Shown here one piece after another: positions 677 through 41,500 of a DNA stretch of 64,000 nt. The notes under the pieces are model-generated. The model did no database searches, was not told the origin of the DNA, and saw only the letters and a program-made list of their open reading frames with translations. Both the position numbers and the translations under genes were made by a program. Each line of letters starts with the position of its first letter. Within the stretch, counting starts at the first letter, position 1. Origin of the DNA: Anthoceros angustus (Eukaryota; Plantae; Anthocerotophyta); assembly GCA_010909165.1 (NCBI GenBank), contig MU008169.1, positions 1,860,001 to 1,924,000 on the forward strand, written 5' to 3'.

Positions 677-3600
677 ATGCTATCCACCGAAGGGGCACCG
701 GTTTCTTCTCTTAAAAAAAAGGCTCGGGCCTGCACTATGCATAGGGTGCAACGAGCTAAACCTCCGCACATGCCAATGGCATGTGGGCCCTACATCACAT
801 CATGCCATGATACATGTATGTTCACACATCCCCTCGCCGTTCGCACCTTGCAAGTCTTGCAGTTACTGCCTAGGCCGTCCCAGTTCTCGCTCCAGGCTCA
901 CCAGGCGATGCGTCGGCGGGGACCATTGTGGACTCGACAAATTGGTGTATGTGCAAGGATTCTACGAGCTCCCGCTCAGCTCACTTCAGGGAGTGACCCC
1001 CCGGGCCGAGCAAACAGCCGAGCCTTCAGGTCGAGCAATGTCAGGAGCCCAGCATTTCCACTTCCGAGAAAATCTGTGGATTGGGATGCGCTATCCAGCG
1101 ATGGCCGTCGCCAGGAGCAGGAGCACTTGTGGCACCAATTTTTTCTGGACCCTACCATGTGGTGGGACAACAGACGGGCTAAGAAGAGCTCCCGATCGCC
1201 GGACTTCCGGCGTAAGGGGTCCGGCGAGGTGCTGTGGTTAAACAGGATCAAGCCAGCTTGGGTTGATGAGCAGCTCCTTTCCTTGGATATGCAGATGGGG
1301 CATGGTACCTCTCCTTCCGAGTCCAGGTTTCCGGATAAGGCTGAACCTGGCAGGCGGGGAGGATCGGGAATGGGCGTCGTTACGGCTGTAACAGTGAGCA
1401 CGTTGTGTCAGCAGGGGAGGCTTTCTGAGGCCGTTGGAGCCCTGGAATCTCTCGCGCAGACAGACTGTGCTATTTCTCAGTCTCTGTTTTGGACTGTGCT
1501 GAAACTGTGTACTGCGAAGAAGGATCTGGCTGTGGGGCGACGAGTTCATGATCTCACTGTCAAACTCGGGCATGAGTCGGATGCATACTTTGGGAACCTT
1601 ATCTTGCGCATGTATGCAAGGGGAGGTAGTCTGCAGGGGGCCATGGATGTGTTCTCCAGGGTGCGCAAACCTAATGTCTTCATGTGGTCTTCCATGATCT
1701 CTGCATATGCTAAGCATGGAAAACCTGACGAGGCCATACAACTGTACCATGAAATGCATTGGTCAGGAGTGAAGGCGGATGCTCACGTCTTTGTAGCTGC
1801 TCTCCAGGCTTGTGCATTTGCCGTTGACTTGGAATCTGGGAGAAAAGTGCACTGTGATGTGTTGCACAGTGGCATTCCTCCTGACTTGTTTGTTGGCACC
1901 TGCCTGGTGGACATGTATGCAAAATGTGGTGAACTGAAAGATGCACGCCGGGTTTTCGACAGCATGGTCACAAAGGATGTGGTAACATGGAACGCCCTGA
2001 TTGCTGGGTATGCAAAATGTGGTGAACTGAAGGATGCACGCCAGGTTTTTGACAGCATGGCCTCAAAGGATGTGGTGACGTGGAATGCCCTGATAGCTGG
2101 GTATGCTGACCAAGGGCTTGGACATGAGGCACTTGTTCTGTATGGACAAATGGAGCAGGAAGGGCTGATTTTGGCCAACCATGTTACTTTTGCTTGCCTT
2201 CTGAAGGCCTGTGCAAGTACTGGTGCCTTACAGAAGGGCAAGCAGCTGCACTCACAGATTGTGAAAAGCGGACTGCTGGATGATGTAGTGTTGGGCAACT
2301 GCCTAGTGGACATGTATGCAAAATGTGGTGAACTGAAGGATGCACGCCAGGTTTTTGACAGCATGGCCACAAAGGATGTGGTGACCTGGAATGCCCTGAT
2401 AGCTGGGTATGCCGACCAGGGGCTCGGACATGAGGCACTTGTTCTGTATGAACAAATGGAGCAGGAGGACCTGATTTTGGCTAATCGTGTTACTTACACT
2501 TGCCTTCTCAAGGCCTGTGCAAGCACTGGTGCCTTACAGAAGGGTAGGCAGCTGCACTCACAGATTGTGGAAAGAGGAGTGCTGGATAACTTAGTGTTGG
2601 GCACCTGCCTGGTGGACATGTATGCAAAATGCGGTGAACTAGAAGATGCACGCCAGGTTTTTGACAGCATGAACACAAAGGATTTGGTGACATGGAATGC
2701 CCTGATTGCTGGGTATGCAAAATGTGGTGAACTGAAGATGCACGCCAGGTTTTTGACAGCATGGCCTCAAAGGATGTGGTGACATGGAATGCCCTGATAG
2801 CTGGGTATGCACCAAGGGCTTGGACATGAGGCACTTGTTGTATGGACAAATGGAGCAGGAGGGCTGATTTTGGCCAACCATGTTACTTTTTGCCTTCTGA
2901 AGGCCTGTGCAAGCACTGGTGCCTTACAGAAGGGCAGGCAGCTGCACTCACATTGTGAAAGAGGACTGCTGGATGATGGTGGTGGGCACCTGCCTGGTGG
3001 ACATGTATGCAAAATGTGGTGAACTGGAAGATGCACGCCAGGTTTTTGACAGCATGGCCACAAAGATGTGGTGACATGGAATGCTGATTGCTGGGTATGC
3101 ACAGCAAGGGCTCGGACATGAGGCGCTTGTTGTGTATGGACAAATGGAGCAGGAGGCCTGATTTTGGCTAACCATGTTACTTGCCTTCTGAAGGCCTGTG
3201 CAAGCACTGGTGCCTTACAGAAGGGCAGGCAGCTGCACTCACAGATTGTCGAAAGAGGACTGCTGGATAACGTAGTGTTGGGCAACTGCCTGGTGGACAT
3301 GTATGCAAAATGTGGTGAACTGGAAGATGCACGCCAGGTTTTTGACAGCATGGCCACAAAGGATGTGGTGACATGGAATGCCCTGATTGCTGGGTATGCA
3401 CAGCAAGGACTCGGACATGAGGCGCTTGTGTATGGACAAATGGAGCAGGAGGCCTGATTTTGGCTAACCATGTTACTTTTGCTTGCCTTCTGAAGGCCTG
3501 TGCAAGCACTGGTGCCTTACAGAAGGGCAGGCAGCTGCACTCACAGATTGTGGAAAGAGGACTGCTGGATAACGTGTTGGGCACCTGCCTGGTGGACATG

Positions 3601-6097
3601 TATGCAAAATGTGAACTAGAAGATGCACGCCAGGTTTTTGACAGCATGAACACAAAGGATTTGGTGACATGGAATGCCCTGATTGCTGGGTATGCACAGC
3701 GAGGACTCGGCCAAGAAGCACTTGTTGTGTATGGACAAATGGAGGAGGCAGGCCTCATTTTGCCTGACAATGTTACTTTTGCTTGCCTTCTGAAGGCGTG
3801 TGGAAGCACTGGTGCCTTGCAGAAGGGCAGACAGCTGCACTCACAGATTGTCGAAAGAAGACTGCTGGATGATGGAGCAGTGGCCCACTGCCTGGTGGAC
3901 ATGTATGCAAAATTTGGTGAACTGAAAGATGCACGTCAGGTTTTTGAAAGCATGGCTAAAAAAGATGTGGTGACATGGACGGTGCTGATCGCTGGGTATG
4001 CACAGCAAGGGCTCGGGCAAGAGGCGCTTGCCGTGTATGAAAGAATGGAGCAGGAGGGGCTCATTTTGGCTGACCATTTTACTTTTGCTTGCCTTCTGAA
4101 AGTCTGTGCAAGCACTGGTGCCTTACCAAAGGGCAGGCAGCTGCACTCACTGATTGTTCACAGAGGACTGCTGGATAACGTAGTGGTGGGCACCTGCCTG
4201 GTGGACATGTATGCAAAATGTGGTGAACTGGAAGATGCACACCAGGTTTTTGACAGCTTGTCCACAAAGAATGTGGTGACATGGACTGCCCTGATTTCTG
4301 GGTATGCACAGCAAGGACTCGCCAAGAGGCGCTTGTGTATGGACAAATGGAGCAGGAGGGCCTGATTTTGGCTAACCATGTTACTTTTGCTTGCCTTCTG
4401 AAGGCCTGTGGAAGCACTGGTGCCTTACAGAAGGGCAGGCAGCTGCACTCACAGATTGTGAAAGAGGACTGCTGGATGATGGAGTGGGCACCTGCCTGGT
4501 GGACATGTATGCAAAATGTGGTGAACTGGAAGATGCACGCCAGGTTTTTGACAGCATGAACACAAAGGATGTGGTGACATGGACCGCCCTGATTGCTGGG
4601 TATGCACAGCAAGGACTCGGCCAAGAGGCGCTTGTTATGTATGGACAAATGGAGCAGGAGGGCCTGATTTTGGCTGACCATGTTACTTTTGCTTGCCTTC
4701 TGAAGGCCTGTGCAAGCACTGGTGCCTTACAGAAGGGCAGGCAGCTGCACTCACTGATTGTCGAAAGAGGACTGCTGGATAACGTAGTGGTGGGCACCTG
4801 CCTGGTGGACATGTATGCAAAATGTGGTGAACTGGAAGATGCACGCCAGGTTTTTGACAGCTTGGCCACAAAGAATGTGGTGACATGGACTGCCCTGATT
4901 GCTGGGTATGCACAGCAAGGACTCGGACATGAGGCGCTTGCTGTGTATGAACGAATGGAGCAGGAGGGCCTGATTTTGGCTAACCATGTTACTTTTGCTT
5001 GCCTTCTGAAGGCGTGTGGAAGCACTGGTGCCTTACAGAAGGGCAGGCAGCTGCACTCGCACATTATTGAAAGAGGACTGCTGGATGATGGAGTGGTGGG
5101 CACCTGCCTGGTGGACATGTATGCAAAATGTGGTGAATTGGAAGATGCACGCCAGGTATTTGACAGCATGAACACAAAGGATGTGGTGACATGGACCGCC
5201 CTGATATCTGCGTATGGTACTTGTGATGAAGGTCACAAGGCACTAGATTGTTTTGAGGATATGTTAGTTGCTGGTGTTCAGCCTAATGATGCTACTTTTA
5301 CTTGCCTTTTAGTGGCATGCAGTCACGAGGGACTGGTCCACGAGGGTCGCAAGCTCTTTGACTCCATGGCCAAACAGCATGACATCAAACCTACTATTGA
5401 GCATTGCAATTGCATGATTGATCTTCTTGCGCGTGCTGGCCATTTAGATGAGGCAGAGAAGATGCTATTATTATGTGAGGACCAAAGTAATGTTGTGGGC
5501 TTGACGTCTTTGTTGAATGCCTGCAAAAGTCACGGGGATATAGAGAGGGCGATGCGGTGTTTTCAAAGCATTGTTAGGCTGGAGCCCCAGGAGGCGCCTG
5601 CCTATGTGCTCATGGCCAATGCCTACGCAGATGCAGGCAGGTGGACCGATGTAGACAGGATTGAAACACAGAGAAGGGCAGCAGGGGCTGACAAGAAACC
5701 TGCAGTGGCAACCATTGAGGTGAATAAGCAGGTACATAGATTTTTGGTGGGAGACAGGAGAGAGGATATTGCACTTAAGGTAGAGAGCACGAATGCACGT
5801 CTGAAGGAGGAAGGAGGCCACGTTCCTCACACAAAGTTAGTGTTGAAGAAAGTGTGTGAGAAGGAAAAGGAAGACGTGCTTTGTGGGCATGCTGAGAAGC
5901 TAGCTCTAGCGTTTGGTCTCTTGAACACTCCAAGTGGGACATCGCTGGTGGTAACTAAGAATCTACGCATGTGCAGTGACTGCCACAGTTCCACAGAGAT
6001 CATGTCAAAGCTTGAACACAGAGACATTGTTGTAAGGGATGGATACCGTGTGCATCGGTTCGCAGCAGGTTCTTGCAGTTGTAAGGGTCAACTGTGA
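677..6097 (+). CDS. PLS-class pentatricopeptide repeat RNA-editing factor: transit-like N-terminus, PDF motif, (P-L-S)n, P2-L2-S2, E1-E2, DYW:KP; intronless; frameshifted between ~2730 and ~4480
   Basis: ORFs 677-2782, 3164-3457, 3460-4365 and 4391-6097 carry repeated VVTWNALIAGY / HVTFACLLKAC / LVDMYAKCG motifs. The C-terminus reads KKPAVATIEV...GHAEKLA...KNLRMCSDCH...CSCKGQL. The start codon is uncertain (several upstream Met codons). Confidence 0.92.
1127..1276 (+). other. PDF motif (OSB organellar ssDNA-binding protein type) inside the PPR gene
   Basis: LWHQFFLDPTMWWDNRRAKKSSRSPDFRRKGSGEVLWLNRIKPAWVDEQL fits the LW..FF..P..WWDNR..K....PDF..K..GE.LWL....P.WV..QL pattern of OSB PDF motifs. 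Confidence 0.85.
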
Positions 6098-7293
6098 GAA
6101 AAATGAAGAAGAGCAGGGTGGAACAGGTGGATGGGTACCAGGCGGGAAGTGGAAGATCATGACATGACTAGCACCCCTGGGCAGCCGTTGTCTAGCTGAC
6201 TGCAAGCAGCATCACAGTGTCTCAACCTAGACTCTGAAACTCATCAGCAGGGACGTGGAGGAGTGGCTGCAGCAATGGCAGCCTACATGAGTGCTGATAC
6301 ATATTCAGGAGGTGGCAGCCCCGAATCAACATGCATTGTGAGGGCACACACTGATGAAATGTCACACTCTGTGTGATCTGCAAACCATAAGACTCATCAG
6401 GTAAAATTGCACATGACGGAGTAACCTCTAGCATCAGTGCATGAAGTCGGGGGCCTGCTATGAAGTGAACCACCCCCATCCTTGATAAATGCACCCTGCA
6501 AAACGAGGAGGCAAGAGGATTTCACAGCTTACAAGAATGCCTACCGACGTGACCATGTCAATTCCACGCCCAGTCCAGAGACCCGAATGACATCTTTCTT
6601 GCAACACACGAACCGGCCATGATTATTCTTCACACCTCAAGTCTTCTCACACCTCATAAGCAAAACCTGAGAGAGGATACACCAGCAACGTTGAAGGCTC
6701 CATAGGTAGGGGACGGCGGTCCTCTGGAGGCTATCCGCCGGCAAGTGAATGCCTCTTTGGAAGGTAAGTTGCCTCCTAGCCACATTAGTTAAAACGAGGG
6801 ACGGGAAAACCAAATGCAAATATTCTTCTCATTTCTTCTTACTGCTTAACGAACTCCATCGTTACGGACTGCATGCGTAGCGAGTCAGAATCCGTGATCG
6901 CTGGATCAAGAACATTCTACACTCTCCAGACAGATTTCCAGCCTATCTGGACATCAAAGCGCAACTTGAAATGTTCTCCAATGACAGCCATTCCAGTGGA
7001 CTGAAAATGTTATATCATGACAACAATTTCACATGAAGACATGCAGTTTGTATAACCTCAACCCAATACCATCACGTGTGCAAGATACTTGTTCACTCAC
7101 ATAAGCATATCTCTAGAGGTTATCAACACTCCATTTCCATTTCCTCATCTTGCTTTGAGCTCATTGTAATGTGGTTCCATACTGCCGCAGGACTCCACCG
7201 TGCTGCCACCAATACCACTAAGTAGTTCGATGCATGAAGACCAGATAGTTGCGAACACAGGCCACATACCGGCAAACACGCCTCCACCACAAT

Positions 7294-7365: not shown

Positions 7366-8068
7366 GCTCCGTCAAAGGGTTGGATCAATACTCTAACTAA
7401 ATACAAAATGCAAAGGAGTAAAGAGATATAACTTACTATTATACTATCTTTACTCAATATAAAAATGAGGATACACTGCATATATAGACTTAAGTTTGAT
7501 TGATATAATCTAGAGAAATATAAATTTAATTTCCATCCTTTGAGCTCGTTGTAATGTGTTTTTTCATTTTCCTTCGGGCATTTGGTAGTTTTAAAATGCT
7601 TGATCGTGGGGGCTAGTCCCCCGAATCTATACTTGATCTCTTAGGCTATGAGCAATATTACTACCTAATCTAAATCGAATTCCTTGAATCACGATTAATG
7701 ACTCTCGGTCCCACTTCATCACGTGATGGATAAGTAGGGGTGAGTCGTACATGCGTATGTAGGGAGGGGGTTACGTATGGCACCGTGCGGTTACGGCTGC
7801 GCATTCCGCAATCTGTAAAATTGAGGCTGCGAATCCGTTGCGGTTGCATGCTGCGGGAGCCCGAACCCTAATCTTGCACCCTTTGGCTTCTTTGCTGCAA
7901 GCTCTTTGCTCAACGTGGCCGGAACCCTCTATGAGGCGGTCCGCAGTATCATGAACGCCGCCATCACGTAGGTGGCCCAGACCCGGTCTAGTGACGAAGA
8001 CGGGCATCATCGAGCGCAACAGTGGCGGCCATGTCATTGTGGCCCTGGAGAAGCTGCTCGTTGCGCAG

Positions 8069-12649
<4,581 letters not shown>

Positions 12650-14724: not shown

Positions 14725-15708
14725 ATGCAGGGTTGCCTTGGAGCCCTGACATGGGCAACACTGGGAGCATTGACATGGGCAACCGTGGGAAGCGTGACAT
14801 GGGCAAGGCCAGCGCAATTGAGCTACGAGCGGCATGGCCCTGGGCACCCTCTGCACTTGCTGGGTGCTAGCGTATTCCTCAGAGTGAACGTCCCGCCTCT
14901 CATCAAGCAGCAGCAGCAGGAGCAATTCGGGCTGACATTCTGCTCCGACCCCAACTGCTCCCTGGACGTCTCGGATGAGGACGCTGTGGACATCGGGCAC
15001 AGAATTTGGGTGAACGAATGCGGCGGCACTATCGAGGGCCTCACCACCTGGAACATCGGGGAGGAATTCGCGTCTTTGGGAATAGGGCACACCATCTGGT
15101 ATCCTGCCGGCGTCCGCGGGCCCTTCCAGGAGTCTTTCCCCTTGCTGGTCCGCTTCCTGGTCGATCAGGAGGGGGTGGTGATACCCGGCTGGCTCACCTA
15201 TGAGGGATCCCCTGACATTGTCACGCCTTGTCCCTGGCGAAGCAAGGCGGAGTTCGACGCGGCACAGGCGTCGCCGCAGATGCTGCAGCTCCGTACCCTG
15301 CTCGCCACCACTGTCAAGGAGCAGTGCCATTTCCTCGCTCGGAGGTTTCAGGAGGCGCTGCCCAAGATCCTGCTCAAGGCGCCTGTGGAAGAAAGAGAAG
15401 TTTTAAGCGCCAGGTTCTACAGCGTCGCTGCCGAGCACCTGGGCTTGTATCCTCTCATGGACTACACCAACTTCAAAGGCGAGGGCACCAGTAATACAGA
15501 GAAGTATCTAGGAGAAGGCTGGGGTCTGCTCCAGGTGCTGCAAAACATGGAGGACACTCTACCCGACGGAAGTATGCATGCCAAGCAAGCCTTTGTCGCA
15601 TCTGCCAAGCAGATGCTAACTCGCAGGGTTGAGAACTCTCCTCCCAATAGAGGTGAGAGACGATGGCTCCTCGGCTGGTTCAATCGCCTCGACACTTACT
15701 TGCTCTAG
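14725..15708 (+). CDS. Bacterial-type conserved hypothetical protein with lysozyme/muramidase-like motifs; candidate HGT gene
   Basis: Intronless GC-rich ORF (open from 14644, first ATG 14725): IWVNECGG...WNIGEEFASLGIGH.IWYP...FQESFP, YPLMDYTNFKGEG...GWGLLQVL, RRVENSP...RWLLGWFNRLDTY. It resembles a bacterial hypothetical family as I recall it, not a plant family. Confidence 0.75.
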   Translation: MQGCLGALTWATLGALTWATVGSVTWARPAQLSYERHGPGHPLHLLGASVFLRVNVPPLIKQQQQEQFGLTFCSDPNCSLDVSDEDAVDIGHRIWVNECGGTIEGLTTWNIGEEFASLGIGHTIWYPAGVRGPFQESFPLLVRFLVDQEGVVIPGWLTYEGSPDIVTPCPWRSKAEFDAAQASPQMLQLRTLLATTVKEQCHFLARRFQEALPKILLKAPVEEREVLSARFYSVAAEHLGLYPLMDYTNFKGEGTSNTEKYLGEGWGLLQVLQNMEDTLPDGSMHAKQAFVASAKQMLTRRVENSPPNRGERRWLLGWFNRLDTYLL

Positions 15709-17156: not shown

Positions 17157-17715
17157 ATACTAATGAAGGCGCCAATATGCTAGCACCCTATGCTCTTATG
17201 CTCCCTCCATAGGGCGCCGGCATGCCGGCGTCCTTAGATAAGTTTTCTGTGAGCGCCAGTGTGCATGCGTCCGCATTAACACTAGGGCTTACAACCACTT
17301 GTCATGCACCCATGCACATTATGACTTACAAGAGGCCATGTGTCGTTTGCTCGTGCAAGAGAATGAGAAAGAACACACCACCTTTGACACTTCTGATGAC
17401 GACGCAGCCTTGGTCGCTCACAAAGATGGTGTCCAACACACAAAATACGTGTTCAATTGCTATGACCTCCGTAGAAAGATAGTCACGGCCTGCAGTGAGT
17501 TCGAGAATAGGGAAGGAACTTGGCCGTGTCATATCTCTCTTCATCGTTCGGATTCCAGTACAGTTTGCGATCATGAATATTAGGGCATGGGTAATTTCAA
17601 ACAGCGTGCTTAGAAAACCGTTGAAATTTGAAAATAGTTTCCATGATTTTGAGTCCAAGATTACGAATTATTAGAATAAGGGGATTTGAAACCGAACCAA
17701 TTATCTATCACTTTT

Positions 17716-17798
17716 ACAACACAAACTATGCTGGCCAAAATATACAACACAAACTATGTTGGCCAAAATATACAACACAAACTATGCTGGCCAAAATA
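17716..17798. repeat. 28-bp tandem repeat, 3 copies
   Basis: ACAACACAAACTATGCTGGCCAAAATAT repeated. Confidence 0.85.
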
Positions 17799-18299
17799 AA
17801 GAAGCATGACTCGAACTAGTAACCTCGGATTTTTATCTCTCTCATTTCAATCCATATTATCTATTCCCCAAACACTAAGAAAAATTTACCTTCAAAGGGC
17901 GCAGGCATGTCGGCGCCTCAAAAGGGACCTTGAACCCAAGTCCTCTTACTGCTTCATTAACTTTCCCATATTAAAATGTAAAGCAACACAAAGTATATGT
18001 TGAATGAGGACGCCGGCATGCCAGCGCCCTCATGCCCTCATCCTTCTTCTTCTTCTTCTTCATGGCCTTATGCTTCTCCATGCTCCTTGTTTTTTATAGC
18101 CAGTCCGGAGAAGCCATGACGGTTCAGGTGGGTTCTTAGCCACTAGCTTAGGTGTCTATCCGACGTTGAGCAGTCTGGAGAAGCCATTACGGTTCATGTA
18201 GTTTCTTAGCAGAAGGAGGGTGTCTGTCCGACGTCCAGCAGTCATTGCCAAAGACCATGAATCTTGGGCACCGGCAGTGTGTCGGCCAACAGCAAATAT

Positions 18300-25453: not shown

Positions 25454-26575
25454 ATGTCTGAGTTACATACATCAACAATGGACTTGGTAAGTCTTTGCTT
25501 GATCATTAGAAGGTTATATACAAACATGATGTCTTGCATGTTGGGATAGTGAGTAATTTTTGGATTGTGAACGATTACGCGAATTTTTCATAAGCAGAAA
25601 CTCTACTATGAACGTTGAGAAGGTTATCAAGATATGGCGAGATTGTGAATGATTTTTACGAATGTGAATAACTTTCTAGTTGTGATTGACTTTTCATGTT
25701 TGTAAATGAATGATTTTTCACGTTTGTAAATAAATTTTTTTTTATTGTGAATGACTTTTCACGTTTCTGTCAAGCAGAAGATTTACAATGAATCCGGAGA
25801 AAATTTTGAAGATATTTACATATTAGGGACGAAAATTGGGACAGGATCCTTCGGCATTGTTTTCGAATGTATGAATCGGAGTACAAAACAGCTATGGGCC
25901 TGTAAATGCATCTCAAAATTAGAGAAGGAAATAGAATCCATTGAAAATATGAGACTTGAAGTACGTATTATGAAACATCTTCCAAACCATCCTTGTATCA
26001 TAGGATTCCAAGATTGTTTTGAGAACGATTATGAAATACGAATAGTTATGGAATTATGCAAAGGAGGCGATATGTTTGACTATATTACTACTAGAGGATA
26101 TTATCGAGAGCAAGATATAGTTAAATTATTTCGACAAGTAATTCAAGCTATCCAATTTTGCCATGACCATGGAATTATACATAGGGATTTGAAACCAGAA
26201 AATTTCCTTTTTGTTGATAGTGACAAGCAAGTTTTAAGACTCATTGATTTTGGATTGGCTGCCTTTCATACCAAAGATAAAAAGCATTCTACTATTGTGG
26301 GTAGTAACTCTTATATGGCTCCAGAGGTATTTCATCAAAGCTATGGGCTTGAAGCAGATATATATAGTGCAGGCATAATATTACATGCTTTATTGAGTGG
26401 ATATGTTCCTCCCTTTTGTGGAAATGGAGTTTACATGAAAGTAAACTTAAGGGAAAATTCTTGGAAAAACATTTCATTGAATGGGAAGGCTTTATTACAA
26501 CTTATGTTAAATCCTCATCCCTGGCTACGCCCAACCTTAGAACAGGTCCTTAATCATGCGTGGATGAAGGAATAG
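25454..26575 (+). CDS. CDPK/CAMK-like Ser/Thr kinase without EF-hands; probable short upstream exon (25454-25486) spliced to 25778-26575
   Basis: GTGSFG, ACK, MELCKGG, HRDLKPENFLF, DFG and APE are all intact. A phase-0 GTAAGT donor at 25487 and CAG acceptor at 25777 give an in-frame join. Stop follows HAWMKE. Confidence 0.8.
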
Positions 26576-36443: not shown

Positions 36444-38531
36444 TTTCATCACATGTTCACTCCAAATACCAACTCGGTCAACGTGAACAAAGAGCTGATA
36501 ACAATTTATACTGTCGCTTGCCGAATAAATTGGTTTGATGTTGAATGTTGCTAAAATTTGCCTTGTTGATTATCCATCAAGTCACACGCCGCACTTATCA
36601 CATACCGTAAGATAGTTATTGAGCTATATCAACAACTTATTGATCTACACGTCTTGTGTCTTCAATGTACTTGAACCTTGATTCCAATATATCCTTACAC
36701 TATGAAAATGCAGCACTCACAAGTTCCACGAATTCAACTCTATGGTCTTGTCCTAATGCATCATGTATTGCAACTCCCTATTTTGTTCTAGTCAAGAACA
36801 TTTTCCTTCCCTCATTTGTTGCATGGTTGCATGCCAAGAAAAATGTTCATGTCATGCTACTTAGTTTTATTTTCTTGAAATTCCCTCCAAGAAATCAATA
36901 TTTTTATTCAAATATTATTATATAAGATACCTTGTACATTATGAGCAACATATTCTTATGTCTTCTCAATTAGATCCTTCTCAGAGTGAAATTCTACTAA
37001 GTGGAATAATGGAATGTCAAACATGACCTTAGGGACAACTAAGCACCACTTTAGTCCATGGTGCAACATAGAATTCAAGCTCCACACAAGTAACCCAAAC
37101 TCTTGAACCAGAGCAACTTAGTATCTTCGCTAGTACTTTACCATATCAAAGCCTAGCCATTCAAGGTCAATTGTTCTTGTTGTTTGCGATCATAAGAAGC
37201 TTTACTTAACAGCTGGGTCTTGGGGCATGAACAAGTACAAATCTATAGTAATTCATGATTCATGAGCTGATTTATATCCACAAACTTTTTCATCAAATAA
37301 AAGTCTTAAACTTTCTTGAACATGAGGAGTCCTCTTTATTTCTAATTATTTTTAGGAATTATATAAATTACATTGGAAGAAGCTCTTTTAAAAGCCCTCA
37401 AGTTTTGTACCACATAGATAATTGATGAACAAGTACTAAGCCTGAAAAGTGCAGAATTGCAAATGCCAAATAAAACACAAGCTCATTTTAGCTCACACCA
37501 CTAATAAGCTATATTATATGTTAGGTAATAAATTTTTAATAATACATGATTGTAGATTATAATATACTACATGACCATAAGAACACTAAGGACGGATGAC
37601 CGTCATGGGACATCCAATACATACACCACCATGTCGGGTGTGCGGATGAGCAGCAAACAAAACAGTGAGCGTGCTATTATAAGTGGTAAGTACATATGTA
37701 CATACATGAGGCGGGGATGATGAACGTGCGGCGCGTGAAAGGCCAGGTCAACTGTCCTCTCCCGAGATGACATCACGCAAATTCGGTCGCCCCTGTGAAA
37801 GAAAGGCCATAGAAAGGGGAATCGGATGCATCCAGCATGTTGGTGCTGCGATACATCCAAGCCAAGCCAGGCTATGGCAGCACAGCACAGCACAGCGCGG
37901 CTTCTGAGCCAGCAGCACATGGAGGAAGGCAAGGTGAAGGTGGAGGCGAGGTTTCACCTTCAGCACCCAACAAGGAAAGAAAAGGGGTGGAGAATCCACT
38001 CTACAATGCAGACGCCGCAAGCGAGGAGGCGAGGTGGGTCGTATTTCGGGAGCGTCGTCGGCGGCGGCCCCCACCAGCAGCGTCACCCGTCTGCTTATAA
38101 TATGGGGAATGGACGCACCACCCTCCAGCTGCGCAATGGCAGCCTGGCCCGGCCTGCTTTGATGCCTTCCCTTCCTTCCCTTCCTTCCCTTCGTACAGCA
38201 AAAGGGGGGAGGAAGTGGAGGCACGAGCCGGGCCCTGCGAATGCTGCCTCGCTTCCTTCCCTTCTCCCCTCCACGCACCCTGCCAAGTATGTAGCGGGAG
38301 GCCCCACCCCGGAGGAATCAACGCGCCTTCCTCTCTTTCTACTTTGACCATGCGTGACAGCCATGCGGCGCCTGCGCACACGCCTCCTTCCAGCTTTTGG
38401 GCTTTCCATCCCCCGTTGCCTGCTCTGTCGATCAGTTCCGGTTGTGGGTTTTTGTGGGCGGTTCGGGAAAATGCGGGGCGGGCGAGGATCTGGTAGCAGG
38501 TAGCAGCGCAGGGTGGTGGAAGCAGGCGGCC

Positions 38532-41500
38532 ATGGGCGCCTTCAAGAATCTCAATCTGGGCGCGCCTGCCCCCAGGCCTGCCGACCACTACGGGAATGGG
38601 GGCCCAGGAGCCTGGGCTCCTGCCCCTGGGATGCACGGCTTTGCTCCCCATCACGCTCCAGCTCCAGCTCCCGCTCCAGCTCCAGCTCCAGCTCCTCGTC
38701 CTTACCCCGCCCACGTTCCAGCTCCAGCTCCAGCTCCAGCCCCAGCCCCAGCCCCTTCGTATGCTCCAGCTCCATCCTACGCTCCAGCCGCTCCTGTTCC
38801 GGTTCCACCTTTTCACGCTCTGGCTCCGGCTGCACCTGCGGCACCTCCTGCTGCTGCTGCTGCCGCTCCTGCCAAGGAGAAATTCAGGCTCAAGAATTTG
38901 TTTAAGAAGAAGGGGAGCAAGGCGGGATCGGAGGGCCCGGGGTACGAGAAGCAGGCTGCGGCGGATGGGTATGGTGGGCAGAGGCAGGCCGAGGCCCAAG
39001 GGGGGTACAGGGGGCCTGGGGATGCGATTGCGCCAGGTGGGTTTGATCCTGGGCCGGAGGATGCTGTTCCGCCGGAGGAACTGATGTGCCCCATCTCGAT
39101 GCTGCTCATGGCGGAGCCGGTGACGGTGTCCTCAGGGGTGGCGTACGAGAAGCGCTGCTTCGAGGCCTGGTTCCAGGCAGGCCAGCGCTACTGCCTCAGG
39201 ACGAACATCCCCATGGAGACCAGCGTTTGCATCCCCAACATCGGGGTGGCCAAGCAGATTGCCCGCTGGTGCCAGGAGCATCAGAGGGGGTTTCCATTGC
39301 CTCCTACCCCGGAGGTCGCGGCTCTGTATGTGCGCAGGGTTTTGCAGCAGCAAGGCGCCCATGTTCCTCCTCCGGGGCCTGGGTTTGGAGGTGGGTCGTT
39401 GCACAAGGGGCATGGGGGGAATGGATATGGGAATGGTGGGAATGGGTATGGGAATGGTGGGAATGGGTATGGGAATGGTGGGAATGGGTATGGGAATGGG
39501 TATGAGCGTGGGGATGGATATGGTGCTGAGTATGCTGGTGCCGGAAATGGGGCAGGGGAGGCAGTGGGAAGTGGGTGTGAGGAGCAGAATGGAGATCTCG
39601 ACGTAGGGGAGGATGCGTATCCGGTGGGTGAGGATCCGTATCCGGTGGGTGAGGCTCCCGATGTGTATATGCCTTCTGCTGGTGTGGGAGTTTCTGACAG
39701 GCACCAGTACCAGCATAGCAGGAGGGGTTCCTCTTCCAGCGACCATGCCAGCACCTCTCGGGCGGGTAAGGAGTATTGGGGGTCAGATTCTAGTGGGGAG
39801 GTGCACAGGCCCTGGGCTGCCAGCTCCAGGCCTGGGAGTAGCGGTGGTGCAAGGCCAGGGAGTAGCGGTGGTGCAAGGCCAGGGAGTAGCGGTGGTGCAA
39901 GGCCAGCGAGTAGCAGTGGTGGAAGGCCGTGGAGTGCAGGAGCAGCAGTTGCTGCTGACGGATTCAGGGTGGTAGTGCCCCCTTCCGTCGGTGAGGGAGT
40001 TCCTACTTTGGCATCCAGATCGACACCAGGTTCAGGACCTCCTTCTGGATCTTTCCCGGACATGGGAGGGAACCAGTATGTTGAGAAGTATGGGGTTGCC
40101 TCTGAGGGGCCCTATTCGGGACCCCCACCACCTGCAGGACTGGTTCCAGCTTCGTTCCAGTACCCTTCCAGCGGGCAGCATGGGGAAGGGTTCAGTGGAG
40201 GGCTGTATTCGGGCGCACCTTCTGAATCTTTGGCCCACTCAGAGAGGGTGGAGGTTGTGCCTGCTTCTGAGGAACCATCGCTACAAGCACCATCTGAAAC
40301 GTTTTCCGACTTGCCAAAGGCAGACAATGCTGTGGATGTTAGTGAGCTTGCTGTTGATGATGATGGCGGAACTGGTTCCCGACCTCATGATTTTCCTGTG
40401 GCCGAGCCTTACCTGCCATCAAGCCCACATTCTGATTCCTCGTCAGGCCTACACTCTGCTTCCTCATCTGGCCCACACTCTTCTTCCTCATCAGGCCCAC
40501 ACTCTGCTTCCTCATCTGGACCGCAGTCAGGGCCTTCTTCTGGATCCTTCCCTGCAGTCTTACCTGTAGTGCAGGCTGTGGAGCAGATTTCTAGTGACGA
40601 GGCAAGGATGACAGCACAGGTAGCATCGAAGCCTCCGCGCAGCAATCTTCTTGTCCACTCCACTTCGTGGACACCTGGTGGCAGCAGTCATGAAGCTGTT
40701 GCTGCTGTTGCTGCTGCTGGTCTTCCTCTGAGTTTGAAAACTGTTCCATCATCTTACTCTGGTGAAAGGCGCCCTCCTCAGGGAATTCCGGAAGAGACAC
40801 GGCCAAGTTCGCAAGCGGCACCGCATTTTGAACCATCTGTGAGGTCTGAAGCAGGCACAAATCTTGAATATCTGGTGGACAAGCTGTATTCTAAGTACCC
40901 CAAGGAGCAAGATGAAGCTGCAGCTGAAATTAGGAAGCTCACACGAGACAGCACAGAGAACAGATTAGCCCTGTGCCACGGAGACCTGGCTGAGAAGGTT
41001 CTTGGTGGATTGATGGAACTTCTGCAATCTCGTCATCAAGCGGTGCAGGTCAACTCAGTAGCTGCAGTCATGAATCTGTCTTTAGAAAGGGAGAACAAGC
41101 TGAAGATTGCTAGGGCTGGTGTAATACCTCACCTGATTGAGGTTCTGAGGGGCAGTGGGGAGGCCCAGGAAATAGCTGCTGGGGCCATTTTCAGCCTGGC
41201 CTTGAACGAGGAAAATAGGATGCCTATCGGTGTGCTTGGAGCCATTCCTCACCTAATGCAACTCTTACGAGTTGGTCGGGGTGGTGCACGAAGAGATGCT
41301 GCAATGGCACTCTACCACCTCTCTTTTGTCCAGATGAATCGCAGCAAGCTTGTCAGGGCTGGCGGGGTCAACATTCTCATGGGCCTCGCTCAGGAGCAGC
41401 AAAGTGATCTAGTCAGCAGGGCACTGCTGATCCTGAGCCACCTTGCTCTCATTCCAGAGGGCAGAGCTGCCTTGTCAGAGATGAGCAACGTTTCGATTCT

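Follow-up and report, generated by a model that had tools for sequence, protein, structure and literature searches.

A bacterial-family gene of the hornwort Anthoceros angustus with a predicted lysozyme-superfamily fold

An intact reading frame of bacterial type

A 64-kb stretch of DNA from the hornwort Anthoceros angustus, the window analysed here, carries a reading frame whose relatives are bacterial, and the questions it raises are where the gene came from and what its product might do. A preliminary description made from the letters alone had called the frame intact and intronless. Indeed, it runs from an ATG at 14725 to a stop at 15706-15708 and specifies a product of 327 amino acids (Table 1). 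The frame is free of stops from 14644, giving a TTG-started version of 354 amino acids, and because no further in-frame Met precedes M186, the ATG at 14725 is the sole one that takes in the domain described below. No second copy of the gene is present in the 64-kb window, and an exact look-up of the 327-residue protein returned no record in public assemblies.

The frame is almost surely the published gene AANG002465, an assignment made by gene order and description, not by sequence. Zhang et al. 2020 (PMC7027989, Supplementary Fig. 80) describe AANG002465 of Anthoceros angustus as intronless, Verrucomicrobia-derived, encoding a 'hypothetical protein' and having plant genes on both sides, and in their annotation AANG002463 is a DYW PPR; in the window a DYW PPR gene likewise lies two positions upstream of the frame. 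Given this match, the horizontal transfer is already known. The same study found no homologues of AANG002465 beyond bacteria and hornwort, demanded transcript support in its HGT pipeline, and gave the protein neither a fold nor a function. What is new here is the fold and the functional reading, not the transfer, and a published 'hypothetical' HGT gene now has a function that can be tested.

Table 1. Features of the locus, with positions in the window
Feature	Positions	Strand	Basis or remark
PPR-DYW gene, final ORF (plant organelle RNA-editing factor type)	4391..6097	+	Context; corresponds to AANG002463
Multi-exon gene with RS-rich N-terminus and split protein-kinase domain (PRP4K-like)	7991..12649	+	Context
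ORF, intact and intronless, 327 codons and stop	14725..15708	+	Probably AANG002465; GC island matches ORF, gene order as in Zhang et al. 2020
N-terminal extension, plant-side, residues 1-42	14725..14850	+	24-nt tandem repeat x3; pLDDT <50; without counterpart in bacterial homologues
Likely relic of bacterial signal peptide, residues 43-58	14851..14898	+	Aligns with bacterial P0001, residues 1-16 counted from Met1
Poly-Q and linker, residues 61-75	14905..14949	+	CAG/AGC run; missing from bacterial homologues
Domain, lysozyme-superfamily (GH46/VgrG3-C-like), residues 76-327	14950..15705	+	50-58% identical to bacterial homologues; AlphaFold model
Glu98 codon (N-E-C), predicted general-acid catalytic residue, end of helix 84-99	15016..15018	+	Invariant in 201 bacterial sequences; alignment offsets
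Glu113 to Ser117 codons, start of beta-hairpin	15061..15075	+	Glu113 and Ser117 both invariant

Residues ~76-327 place the protein in a bacterial family without a name, which comprises 3825 clusters and at least 595 GTDB species, is found mainly in Verrucomicrobiota, and whose members are ~250 amino acids long and carry signal peptides or lipoboxes. The best 120 database matches are all bacterial or metagenomic and are annotated only as 'hypothetical protein', in keeping with the earlier impression of an uncharacterised bacterial family. None of these 120 is named for a eukaryote and none exceeds 58% identity, the searched set being one without a plant genome collection. The best 80 genome loci come mostly from Chthoniobacterales, Terrimicrobiaceae and Verrucomicrobiales. 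Neither the window protein nor bacterial members matched anything in Pfam (E<=1), NCBIfam or PHROGs, and PDB sequence and profile searches (profile E<=10) gave no meaningful match; a LysR regulator, the single PDB match at E 0.12, was dismissed as noise.

Hydrophobic N-termini are found in 57 of 84 bacterial sequences and lipobox-like motifs in 14. The family members stand as single genes in a neighbourhood that is mainly housekeeping (dnaN, PolX, CinA, FKBP, ClpXP, trigger factor) and for that reason uninformative. In 22 loci the family gene is followed on the same strand by one for a YkuD L,D-transpeptidase, the two mostly overlapping by 4 nt, and in 19 a GH3 (NagZ-like) gene lies close by. 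This arrangement occurs in a single clade, with 2 changes on the tree, and therefore counts as one observation; the clade is not the one nearest the plant gene. The bacterial proteins are exported (periplasmic or lipoprotein), mostly basic, ~250 amino acids long and probably enzymes that cleave the glycan of peptidoglycan.

Predicted fold and candidate catalytic residues

The AlphaFold model is confident, with pLDDT above 90 over residues 79-327, and displays the two-lobed alpha+beta architecture of the lysozyme-like superfamily (T4 lysozyme, GH46 and GH19 types), in which an N-terminal helix leads into a small beta-sheet and a helical lower lobe and a cleft runs between the lobes. Its closest structural matches are GH46 chitosanases, which align over the whole domain (189-197 residues) with Z 8.0-9.8, rmsd 4.3-5.6 Å and 9-12% identity. 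They are followed by the VgrG3 C-terminal domain (4nso, 4noo; Z 8.0-8.4 over 176-185 residues), the P22 and T4 lysozymes (Z 6-6.8, ~140 residues aligned), a GH80 chitosanase (Z 6.2), and pesticin, SagA, GH108, MltC and MltE (Z 5-6). In a wide structure search more than 40 of the best 50 chains are lysozymes, chitosanases or T4L fusions, and a second search agrees. The top nine Foldseek matches are all GH46, with probability up to 0.97, and the language-model neighbours of the domain are GH46 and VgrG3-like_C. At Z 8-10 with this rmsd, the fold match of the predicted structure is of moderate strength. The lysozyme-like fold that the preliminary description had proposed is thus recovered in the model, by GH46 as well as by T4/P22 structures.

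The three motifs singled out in that description, N97-E98-C99-G-G, L118-G-I-G-H122 and G317-W318..N-R321, are all present and are invariant across the family. In the model residues 84-99 form a helix, and residues 116-118 and 123-125 form strands. Alignment start offsets, read on the assumption that helix 84-99 contains no gap, set model residue 81 at chain residue 2 of two GH46 entries labelled 'E19A' (7c6d, 6lwu), which places Glu98 on E19, and model residue 88 at residue 1 of T4 lysozyme, which places Glu98 on Glu11. The idea that the glutamate of N-E-C echoes the catalytic glutamate of T4-type lysozymes therefore finds a counterpart in the model offsets. The companion idea, that the LGIGH hairpin corresponds to IGIGH of T4 lysozyme, stands in that the motifs align, yet hhalign gives the comparison of the family profile with T4 lysozyme a probability of just 3.7% over 20 columns, and we use it as a lead; in this alignment G-I-G-H lies on G-I-G-H and Ser117 on Thr26, but Asp20 of T4 lysozyme falls on Ile111. 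The third likeness, of GW.NR to GH108/TtsA, lacks specific support because GH108-type structures reach only Z 5.3-5.6 (2ikb 5.3, 2nr7 5.6), GH46 and VgrG3-C being closer. A GH108/TtsA-type muramidase (PF05838) was rejected, there being no Pfam match and a Z of ~5.5, well below GH46 and VgrG3-C.

Comparison with characterised enzymes places the domain near several families by fold, and by sequence it matches none of them. The GH46 chitosanases (B. circulans MH-K1, 1qgi; Streptomyces N174, 1chk; B. subtilis CsnMY002, 7c6d) are likewise two-lobed, mostly helical proteins of ~240 amino acids, and judged by the model they share a catalytic Glu that ends the first helix, in the place of Glu98, with a beta-hairpin after it. 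They differ in that no sequence similarity was detected, PF01374 is not matched, and the genomic context of the bacterial family points to its own cell wall, not to chitosan. The spacing of the carboxylates differs as well: GH46 enzymes have the second one at about +18 from the catalytic Glu, whereas Glu113, the candidate second carboxylate of the plant domain, follows Glu98 at +15. The C-terminal domain of Vibrio cholerae VgrG3, a T6SS effector (PF21277), has the same chitosanase-like lysozyme fold, again with neither a PF21277 nor a sequence match, but the family of the hornwort gene consists of free-standing exported proteins, and no VgrG spike or cognate immunity gene was seen adjoining. 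The GH24 lysozymes of T4/P22 type belong to the same superfamily and have in common with the domain the catalytic position (Glu98 on Glu11), the L/I-G-I-G-H hairpin and the correspondence of Ser117 to Thr26. The hornwort domain is, however, ~100 residues bigger and does not match PF00959, and neither its sequence nor a Glu-Asp-Thr triad would make it a member of GH24.

Substrate, targeting and possible role

Because a lysozyme/chitosanase-type fold goes together with a retained catalytic Glu, the protein probably cuts a cell-wall sugar chain. On balance we favour, with a modest degree of confidence, the reading that this is a nuclear hornwort gene of bacterial origin whose product is a glycosidase with one domain, a member of the lysozyme superfamily closest in architecture to GH46 and VgrG3-C. 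In such an enzyme Glu98, which closes the first helix on its C-terminal side, would protonate the beta-1,4 glycosidic oxygen of a glycan lying in the inter-lobe cleft, and a second conserved residue on the next hairpin (Glu113, with Ser117/Asn110) would place or activate the water. We infer that the substrate is most likely bacterial peptidoglycan, or else a chitosan-like glycan, and the biological role may be antibacterial defence or the handling of associated bacteria, Nostoc included.

If peptidoglycan lysis is indeed the activity, a land plant would here have captured a bacterial lysozyme of a second, independent kind, GH25 being the first. Metcalf et al. 2014 (PMC4241558) describe a bacterial GH25 muramidase gene transferred to Selaginella, an aphid and fungi, and that case resembles the present one in that a bacterial cell-wall glycosidase gene was taken into a plant nuclear genome and is still intact. 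The two differ in that GH25 is a TIM-like barrel, whereas the hornwort protein comes from an uncharacterised family and has a predicted activity only. As the host lineage houses cyanobacteria, it would be directly testable whether the enzyme helps to control symbionts or the microbiome. The same reading extends to the large bacterial family, which, with thousands of sequences from at least 595 species and no Pfam model, looks like an unrecognised branch of the lysozyme/chitosanase superfamily.

The most serious competing view of the substrate, which we nevertheless consider unlikely, is that the protein resembles chitosanases in hydrolysing GlcN/GlcNAc polymers (chitosan or chitin of fungal walls, or another amino-sugar glycan) and that the hornwort either directs it at fungi or uses it in concert with them. 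All nine of the top structural matches are GH46 and span the whole domain, which fits this view, as do the GH46 language-model neighbours and the GH80 match, and the acidic plant copy (pI 5.1) might be likened to the cleft of chitosan-binding enzymes. Yet no GH46 sequence is matched, the VgrG3 C-terminal domain, which degrades peptidoglycan, is built on the same architecture, and the bacterial family occupies housekeeping neighbourhoods, with one clade showing the operon-like pairing with an L,D-transpeptidase gene and a NagZ-like gene close by. The bacterial domains, moreover, are basic (median pI 9.3), a difference from the plant copy that could reflect an altered substrate or role.

The preliminary description had noted a GALTWAT-type repeat in three copies and a poly-Q stretch in the N-terminal extension, and both are there: a 24-nt tandem repeat of 2.8-3 copies at 14737-14808 gives an 8-residue repeat of G-A-L-T-W-A-T type, and a CAG/AGC run at 14906-24 codes for the poly-Q. 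Residues 1-27 are uncharged and rich in Thr, Ala and Gly, an Arg follows, and the first acidic residue does not come before position 35. The N-terminus is moderately hydrophobic only (the Kyte-Doolittle 11-residue mean peaks at 1.31), which makes secretion of the plant protein no more than possible. Residues 1-42 are a possible targeting peptide, of signal or transit type alike, the two not being separable by the simple hydropathy and composition used. Residues 43-58, to judge from one weak pairwise alignment, are the likely leftover of a bacterial signal peptide. After the transfer the bacterial signal peptide has probably decayed in the plant, which gained a new N-terminus of 42 residues, partly from the 24-nt tandem repeat, and the poly-Q linker; the domain turned acidic and retained nearly all of its family-invariant residues.

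A fuller scenario can be built on these features, and in its full detail it is speculative and rather unlikely to hold. The family would be a new, unnamed glycoside hydrolase family of periplasmic peptidoglycan cleavers within the lysozyme superfamily, and the hornwort copy, with its new targeting peptide and acidic shift, would be secreted into apoplastic mucilage cavities, where it would control or feed on Nostoc or other bacteria.

Bryophyte chloroplasts retain a plastid peptidoglycan layer, and the product could instead be plastid-targeted and remodel that layer, with foreign bacteria playing no part. Residues 1-27 and the Arg after them suit a transit peptide no less than a signal peptide. 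The extension, however, is a young-looking tandem repeat, and an essential plastid role is unlikely because the gene is hornwort-only according to Zhang et al. 2020 (PMC7027989), whereas peptidoglycan in plastids goes back much further and occurs far more widely. We hold plastid remodelling to be quite improbable.

Descent, conservation and chromosomal setting

The gene is bacterial in origin, and its donor lies in or near a subfamily dominated by Verrucomicrobiota. In a careful ML tree the frame falls inside a 34-row bacterial set, mostly Verrucomicrobiota (UFboot 96 / SH-aLRT 88), so that the nesting within bacteria by which the preliminary description proposed to judge a transfer is found. 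Inside this set it joins three Kapaibacterium/Ignavibacteria rows (95/63), and a rare spacer of 12-13 amino acids (5 of 201 sequences) is shared with that group alone. Sequences of Kapaibacteria type may be the closest sampled relatives.

Of the 91 columns conserved across the family, 88 are retained in the plant copy (55 of the 57 conserved at >=99% and 33 of the 34 at 90-99%), which has the majority residue in just 64 of 155 variable columns. Its end branch, at 1.03, is about five times the median of 0.22. This pattern fits selection acting on the protein, although it does not single out the stretch of the branch that belongs to the plant. It could be argued that the plant does not use the gene, which would then be a relic, decaying or without function, whose conservation dates from a bacterial donor outside the sample and precedes a recent transfer. 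The composition of the frame (GC/GC3 0.59/0.71) is still like that of bacterial homologues (0.61/0.69) and unlike that of neighbouring exons (GC3 0.43-0.60), and the best 120 database matches hold no orthologue, just as public assemblies hold no exact record of the protein. Set against this, the frame of 327 codons is intact, the plant-side changes (new N-terminus, poly-Q, charge shift) are all in frame, the conserved columns have been retained along the long branch, and the pipeline of Zhang et al. 2020 (PMC7027989) kept transcript-supported genes only. We regard a relic as very improbable.

The chromosomal setting is that of a plant. The frame had been described as lying between PRP4K and TE debris, and this holds in outline: an RS-rich kinase gene, which is PRP4K-like, lies ~2 kb upstream on the same strand, and gene-poor, repeat-bearing DNA lies 3' of the frame, with a further plant kinase at 25751-26575. 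We sought repeats or TE ends beside the frame that might account for its capture and found none. The flanks hold no remnants of bacterial neighbour genes, so that host genes surround the frame and no donor genes accompany it. As a gene of a bacterial family sits within plant DNA, bacterium-to-plant transfer is the right reading. A sharp-edged GC island coincides with the frame (GC 0.51-0.66, against 0.37-0.47 in the flanks). This island and the bacterial-type, intron-free frame could by themselves suggest DNA of a contaminating bacterium, or a chimeric join in the assembly, instead of plant DNA, but we reject that explanation as extremely unlikely: the island is just ~1 kb long and is flanked on both sides by plant-like, AT-richer, ORF-poor DNA without bacterial genes, identity to any of the thousands of sampled bacterial sequences is at most 58%, the plant-side N-terminal extension occurs in no bacterial member, and the same arrangement is present in an independent published assembly (Zhang et al. 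2020, PMC7027989).

Fold and putative active site

An AlphaFold2 model of the ORF product, computed from an alignment of 74 sequences, reaches pLDDT >90 over residues 79–327, and residues 1–71 are disordered. In an exhaustive structural search, combined with a second look at the Foldseek matches, the domain matches GH46 chitosanases over its whole length at Z 8.0–9.8 (189–197 residues aligned) and the VgrG3 C-terminal domain at Z 8.0–8.4 (176–185 residues), followed by P22/T4 lysozymes and fungal GH24 proteins at Z 6–6.8 (about 140–150 residues) and by GH80 chitosanase, pesticin, SagA, GH108-type proteins and MltC/MltE at Z 5–6.4. The nine best Foldseek matches in the PDB are all GH46 (E 0.05–0.5, probability up to 0.97), endolysins and chitosanases are among the best matches in a viral library at weak E-values, and the language-model neighbours, taken as a lead only, are GH46 and VgrG3-like_C (score 0.83). 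ESM Atlas models of the bacterial homologues superpose at TM 0.96. Because almost all high-ranking chains come from one superfamily and the matches cover the full domain, a lysozyme-superfamily fold is well supported by the model. Moderate Z values and a high rmsd (4.3–5.6 Å) would be in line with a different hinge opening.

The preliminary description had called the domain lysozyme-like, with echoes of GH24 and GH108. For the fold and the catalytic Glu that reading is supported, but the nearest known architectures are GH46 and VgrG3-C rather than GH24 or GH108 (Z 8.0–9.8 vs 5–6.8), and the GH108 echo is not borne out, GH108-type proteins appearing only in the lowest-scoring group. Sequence tests of membership failed for every named GH family, and the domain is best regarded as representing a new member family, still uncharacterised, within the lysozyme superfamily; the HGT gene that carries it was already known.

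Helix 84–99 terminates in an invariant N97-E98. Model residue 81 aligns with residue 2 of the GH46 entries 7c6d and 6lwu, both titled as the catalytic mutant E19A, and residue 88 with residue 1 of T4 lysozyme; by both offsets Glu98 falls on the catalytic Glu (E19 of these GH46 entries, Glu11 of T4 lysozyme), provided that there is no gap within the helix. The offsets for 1chk (78 with 2), 1qgi (77 with 16) and 4olt (78 with 5) likewise place Glu98 on Glu22, Glu37 and Glu25. In the hairpin that follows, E113, S117, G119, I120 and H122 are invariant, and Glu113 is a candidate general base. The L-G-I-G-H motif noted previously is conserved. The hhalign alignment that sets S117 opposite Thr26 of T4 lysozyme and G-I-G-H opposite G-I-G-H has a probability of only 3.7%. 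Two further invariant blocks in the lower lobe, D-Y-x-N-F-K-G-E-G (246–254) and G-W-G-L-L-Q (265–270), probably line the cleft.

Bacterial relatives and transfer

Scans of Pfam, NCBIfam and PHROGs matched no curated family, and PDB sequence and profile searches were blank. A word-index search returned 3825 clusters, the best at 50–58% identity across ORF residues ~76–327, in keeping with the uncharacterised bacterial family first proposed. Nearly all are 250–300 aa and unnamed or 'hypothetical', the few named ones being Terrimicrobiaceae or Chthoniobacterales. At least 595 stretches of a species-representative genome collection encode a relative; among the best 80, Verrucomicrobiota (Chthoniobacterales, Terrimicrobiaceae, Verrucomicrobiales) predominate overwhelmingly, and a few come from Kapaibacterium/Ignavibacteria, Obscuribacterales, Elusimicrobia and other bins.

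In a maximum-likelihood tree of 82 rows (LG+C20+F+G4), the ORF nests, as transfer predicts, inside a mostly verrucomicrobial set of 34 rows with support 96/88, on an end branch of 1.03 changes per site (median 0.22). We confirm that the ORF has a bacterial origin and reflects horizontal transfer, not contamination. Its GC and GC3 (0.59/0.71) are still close to those of the homologues (0.61/0.69), and a sharp-edged GC island coincides with it (0.51–0.66 inside vs 0.37–0.47 just outside on both sides). Its flanks hold no remnant of the genes neighbouring bacterial homologues, and no second copy was found within the 64-kb window.

This origin is already published. Zhang et al. 2020 (PMC7027989) reported one A. 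angustus HGT family from Verrucomicrobia; its gene AANG002465 is an intronless 'hypothetical protein' on scaffold19 with plant genes either side and homologues confined to bacteria and hornwort (Supplementary Fig. 80). In the same paper AANG002463 is a DYW-type PPR (PPR table), probably the PPR-DYW gene of the window, and the order PPR-DYW, kinase gene, ORF would match gene numbers ...463, ...464 and ...465. By gene order and description, the ORF is very probably AANG002465. That paper's HGT pipeline dropped candidates without transcript evidence, and this filter is our one indication that the ORF is expressed.

The closest rows to the ORF are three Kapaibacterium/Ignavibacteria sequences, a grouping not fully supported (95/63) and possibly due to long-branch attraction. 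Because a rare long W156-P170 spacer is common only to the ORF (13 aa) and that group (12–13 aa; 5 of 201 bacterial sequences, including genome loci L010, L013 and L056), the donor may have been Kapaibacteria-like rather than verrucomicrobial as published.

With conservation columns set from the 201 bacterial sequences, leaving out the plant protein, the latter retains 55 of the 57 columns conserved at ≥99% and 33 of the 34 at 90–99%, departing at F123T, V248T and R260K; of the 155 variable columns, it agrees with the majority residue at only 64. The pattern reads as that of a working protein, the constraint being not assignable to the plant part of the branch. The domain is acidic in the plant (pI 5.1) and the homologues are basic (median 9.3, >8.5 in 65 of 79); the plant branch shows a pronounced change of charge.

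Substrate and targeting

Peptidoglycan is the somewhat favoured substrate. The bacterial proteins are exported, judging by N-termini that are hydrophobic and signal-peptide-like, some with lipoboxes; they are basic, as many lysozymes are; their gene is single-copy amid housekeeping neighbours; and VgrG3-C, of the same architecture, can act on peptidoglycan. In one verrucomicrobial clade, a YkuD L,D-transpeptidase gene comes next on the same strand (22 loci, typically with a 4-nt overlap) and a GH3 NagZ-like gene lies 1.7–3 kb upstream on the other strand (19 loci). However, being confined to that clade, with two changes on the tree, the YkuD arrangement counts as a single observation. Chitosanases also head the structural matches, which speaks against peptidoglycan and for chitosan-like or other glycans, an unlikely alternative; the remaining probability falls to no catalysis or no function.

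The first 42 residues and a 15-residue poly-Q insert, encoded by a CAG/AGC run, are in no bacterial member; this insert and the threefold G-A-L-T-W-A-T-type repeat are present as first described, in an ORF that is indeed intact. The new N-terminus is uncharged over 27 residues, then reads T-W-A/R-P, and is modestly hydrophobic (highest 11-residue Kyte-Doolittle mean 1.31); judged from sequence, it could be either a signal peptide for secretion or a plastid transit peptide. Defence, Nostoc control and plastid wall remodelling, the roles put forward in the preliminary description, are hypothetical. Residues 43–58 align with residues 1–16 of one bacterial homologue and look like a decayed bacterial signal peptide.

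Genomic neighbourhood

Features of the window and of bacterial loci (the latter in their own coordinates)
Feature	Position	Strand	Description
PPR-DYW gene	677–6097	+	last ORF 4391–6097, Pfam PPR, E-motif and DYW deaminase domains confirmed
Kinase gene	7991–12649	+	multi-exon; RS-rich first exon, split protein-kinase domain
First kinase exon	7991–9298		very long, Arg/Ser/Asp/Glu-rich, 435-aa ORF
ORF	14725–15708	+	ATG 14725, stop 15706–15708, 327 codons; open frame from 14644
24-nt unit, x3	14737–14808	+	encodes 8-residue repeat
Domain	14950–15705		predicted lysozyme-superfamily fold
W156-P170 spacer	15190–15230		residues 157–169
Inverted repeats	17211–18030		24-nt GC-rich pair, 772 nt between
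Tandem repeat	17715–17803		28-nt unit x3
Kinase ORF	25751–26575		intact, intronless, 274 aa, complete Ser/Thr protein kinase domain; AT-rich stretch (36–38% GC)
GC-rich block	38001–40000		2 kb, 63% GC, far over surroundings (37–52%)
YkuD arrangement	about 5700–6350		in each of L015, L025, L028, L036, L040, L043, L045, L049, L050 and others

Two plant genes lie upstream of the ORF on its strand. An Arg/Ser/Asp/Glu-rich exon before split kinase exons is a usual feature of PRP4-type splicing kinases, and the second gene is a putative PRP4K; Pfam gave no match to the 435-aa ORF of its first exon. On the 3' side, ORF-poor DNA with small repeats is followed by a further plant kinase gene, and the tandem repeat and inverted repeat pair downstream of the ORF are possible TE debris.
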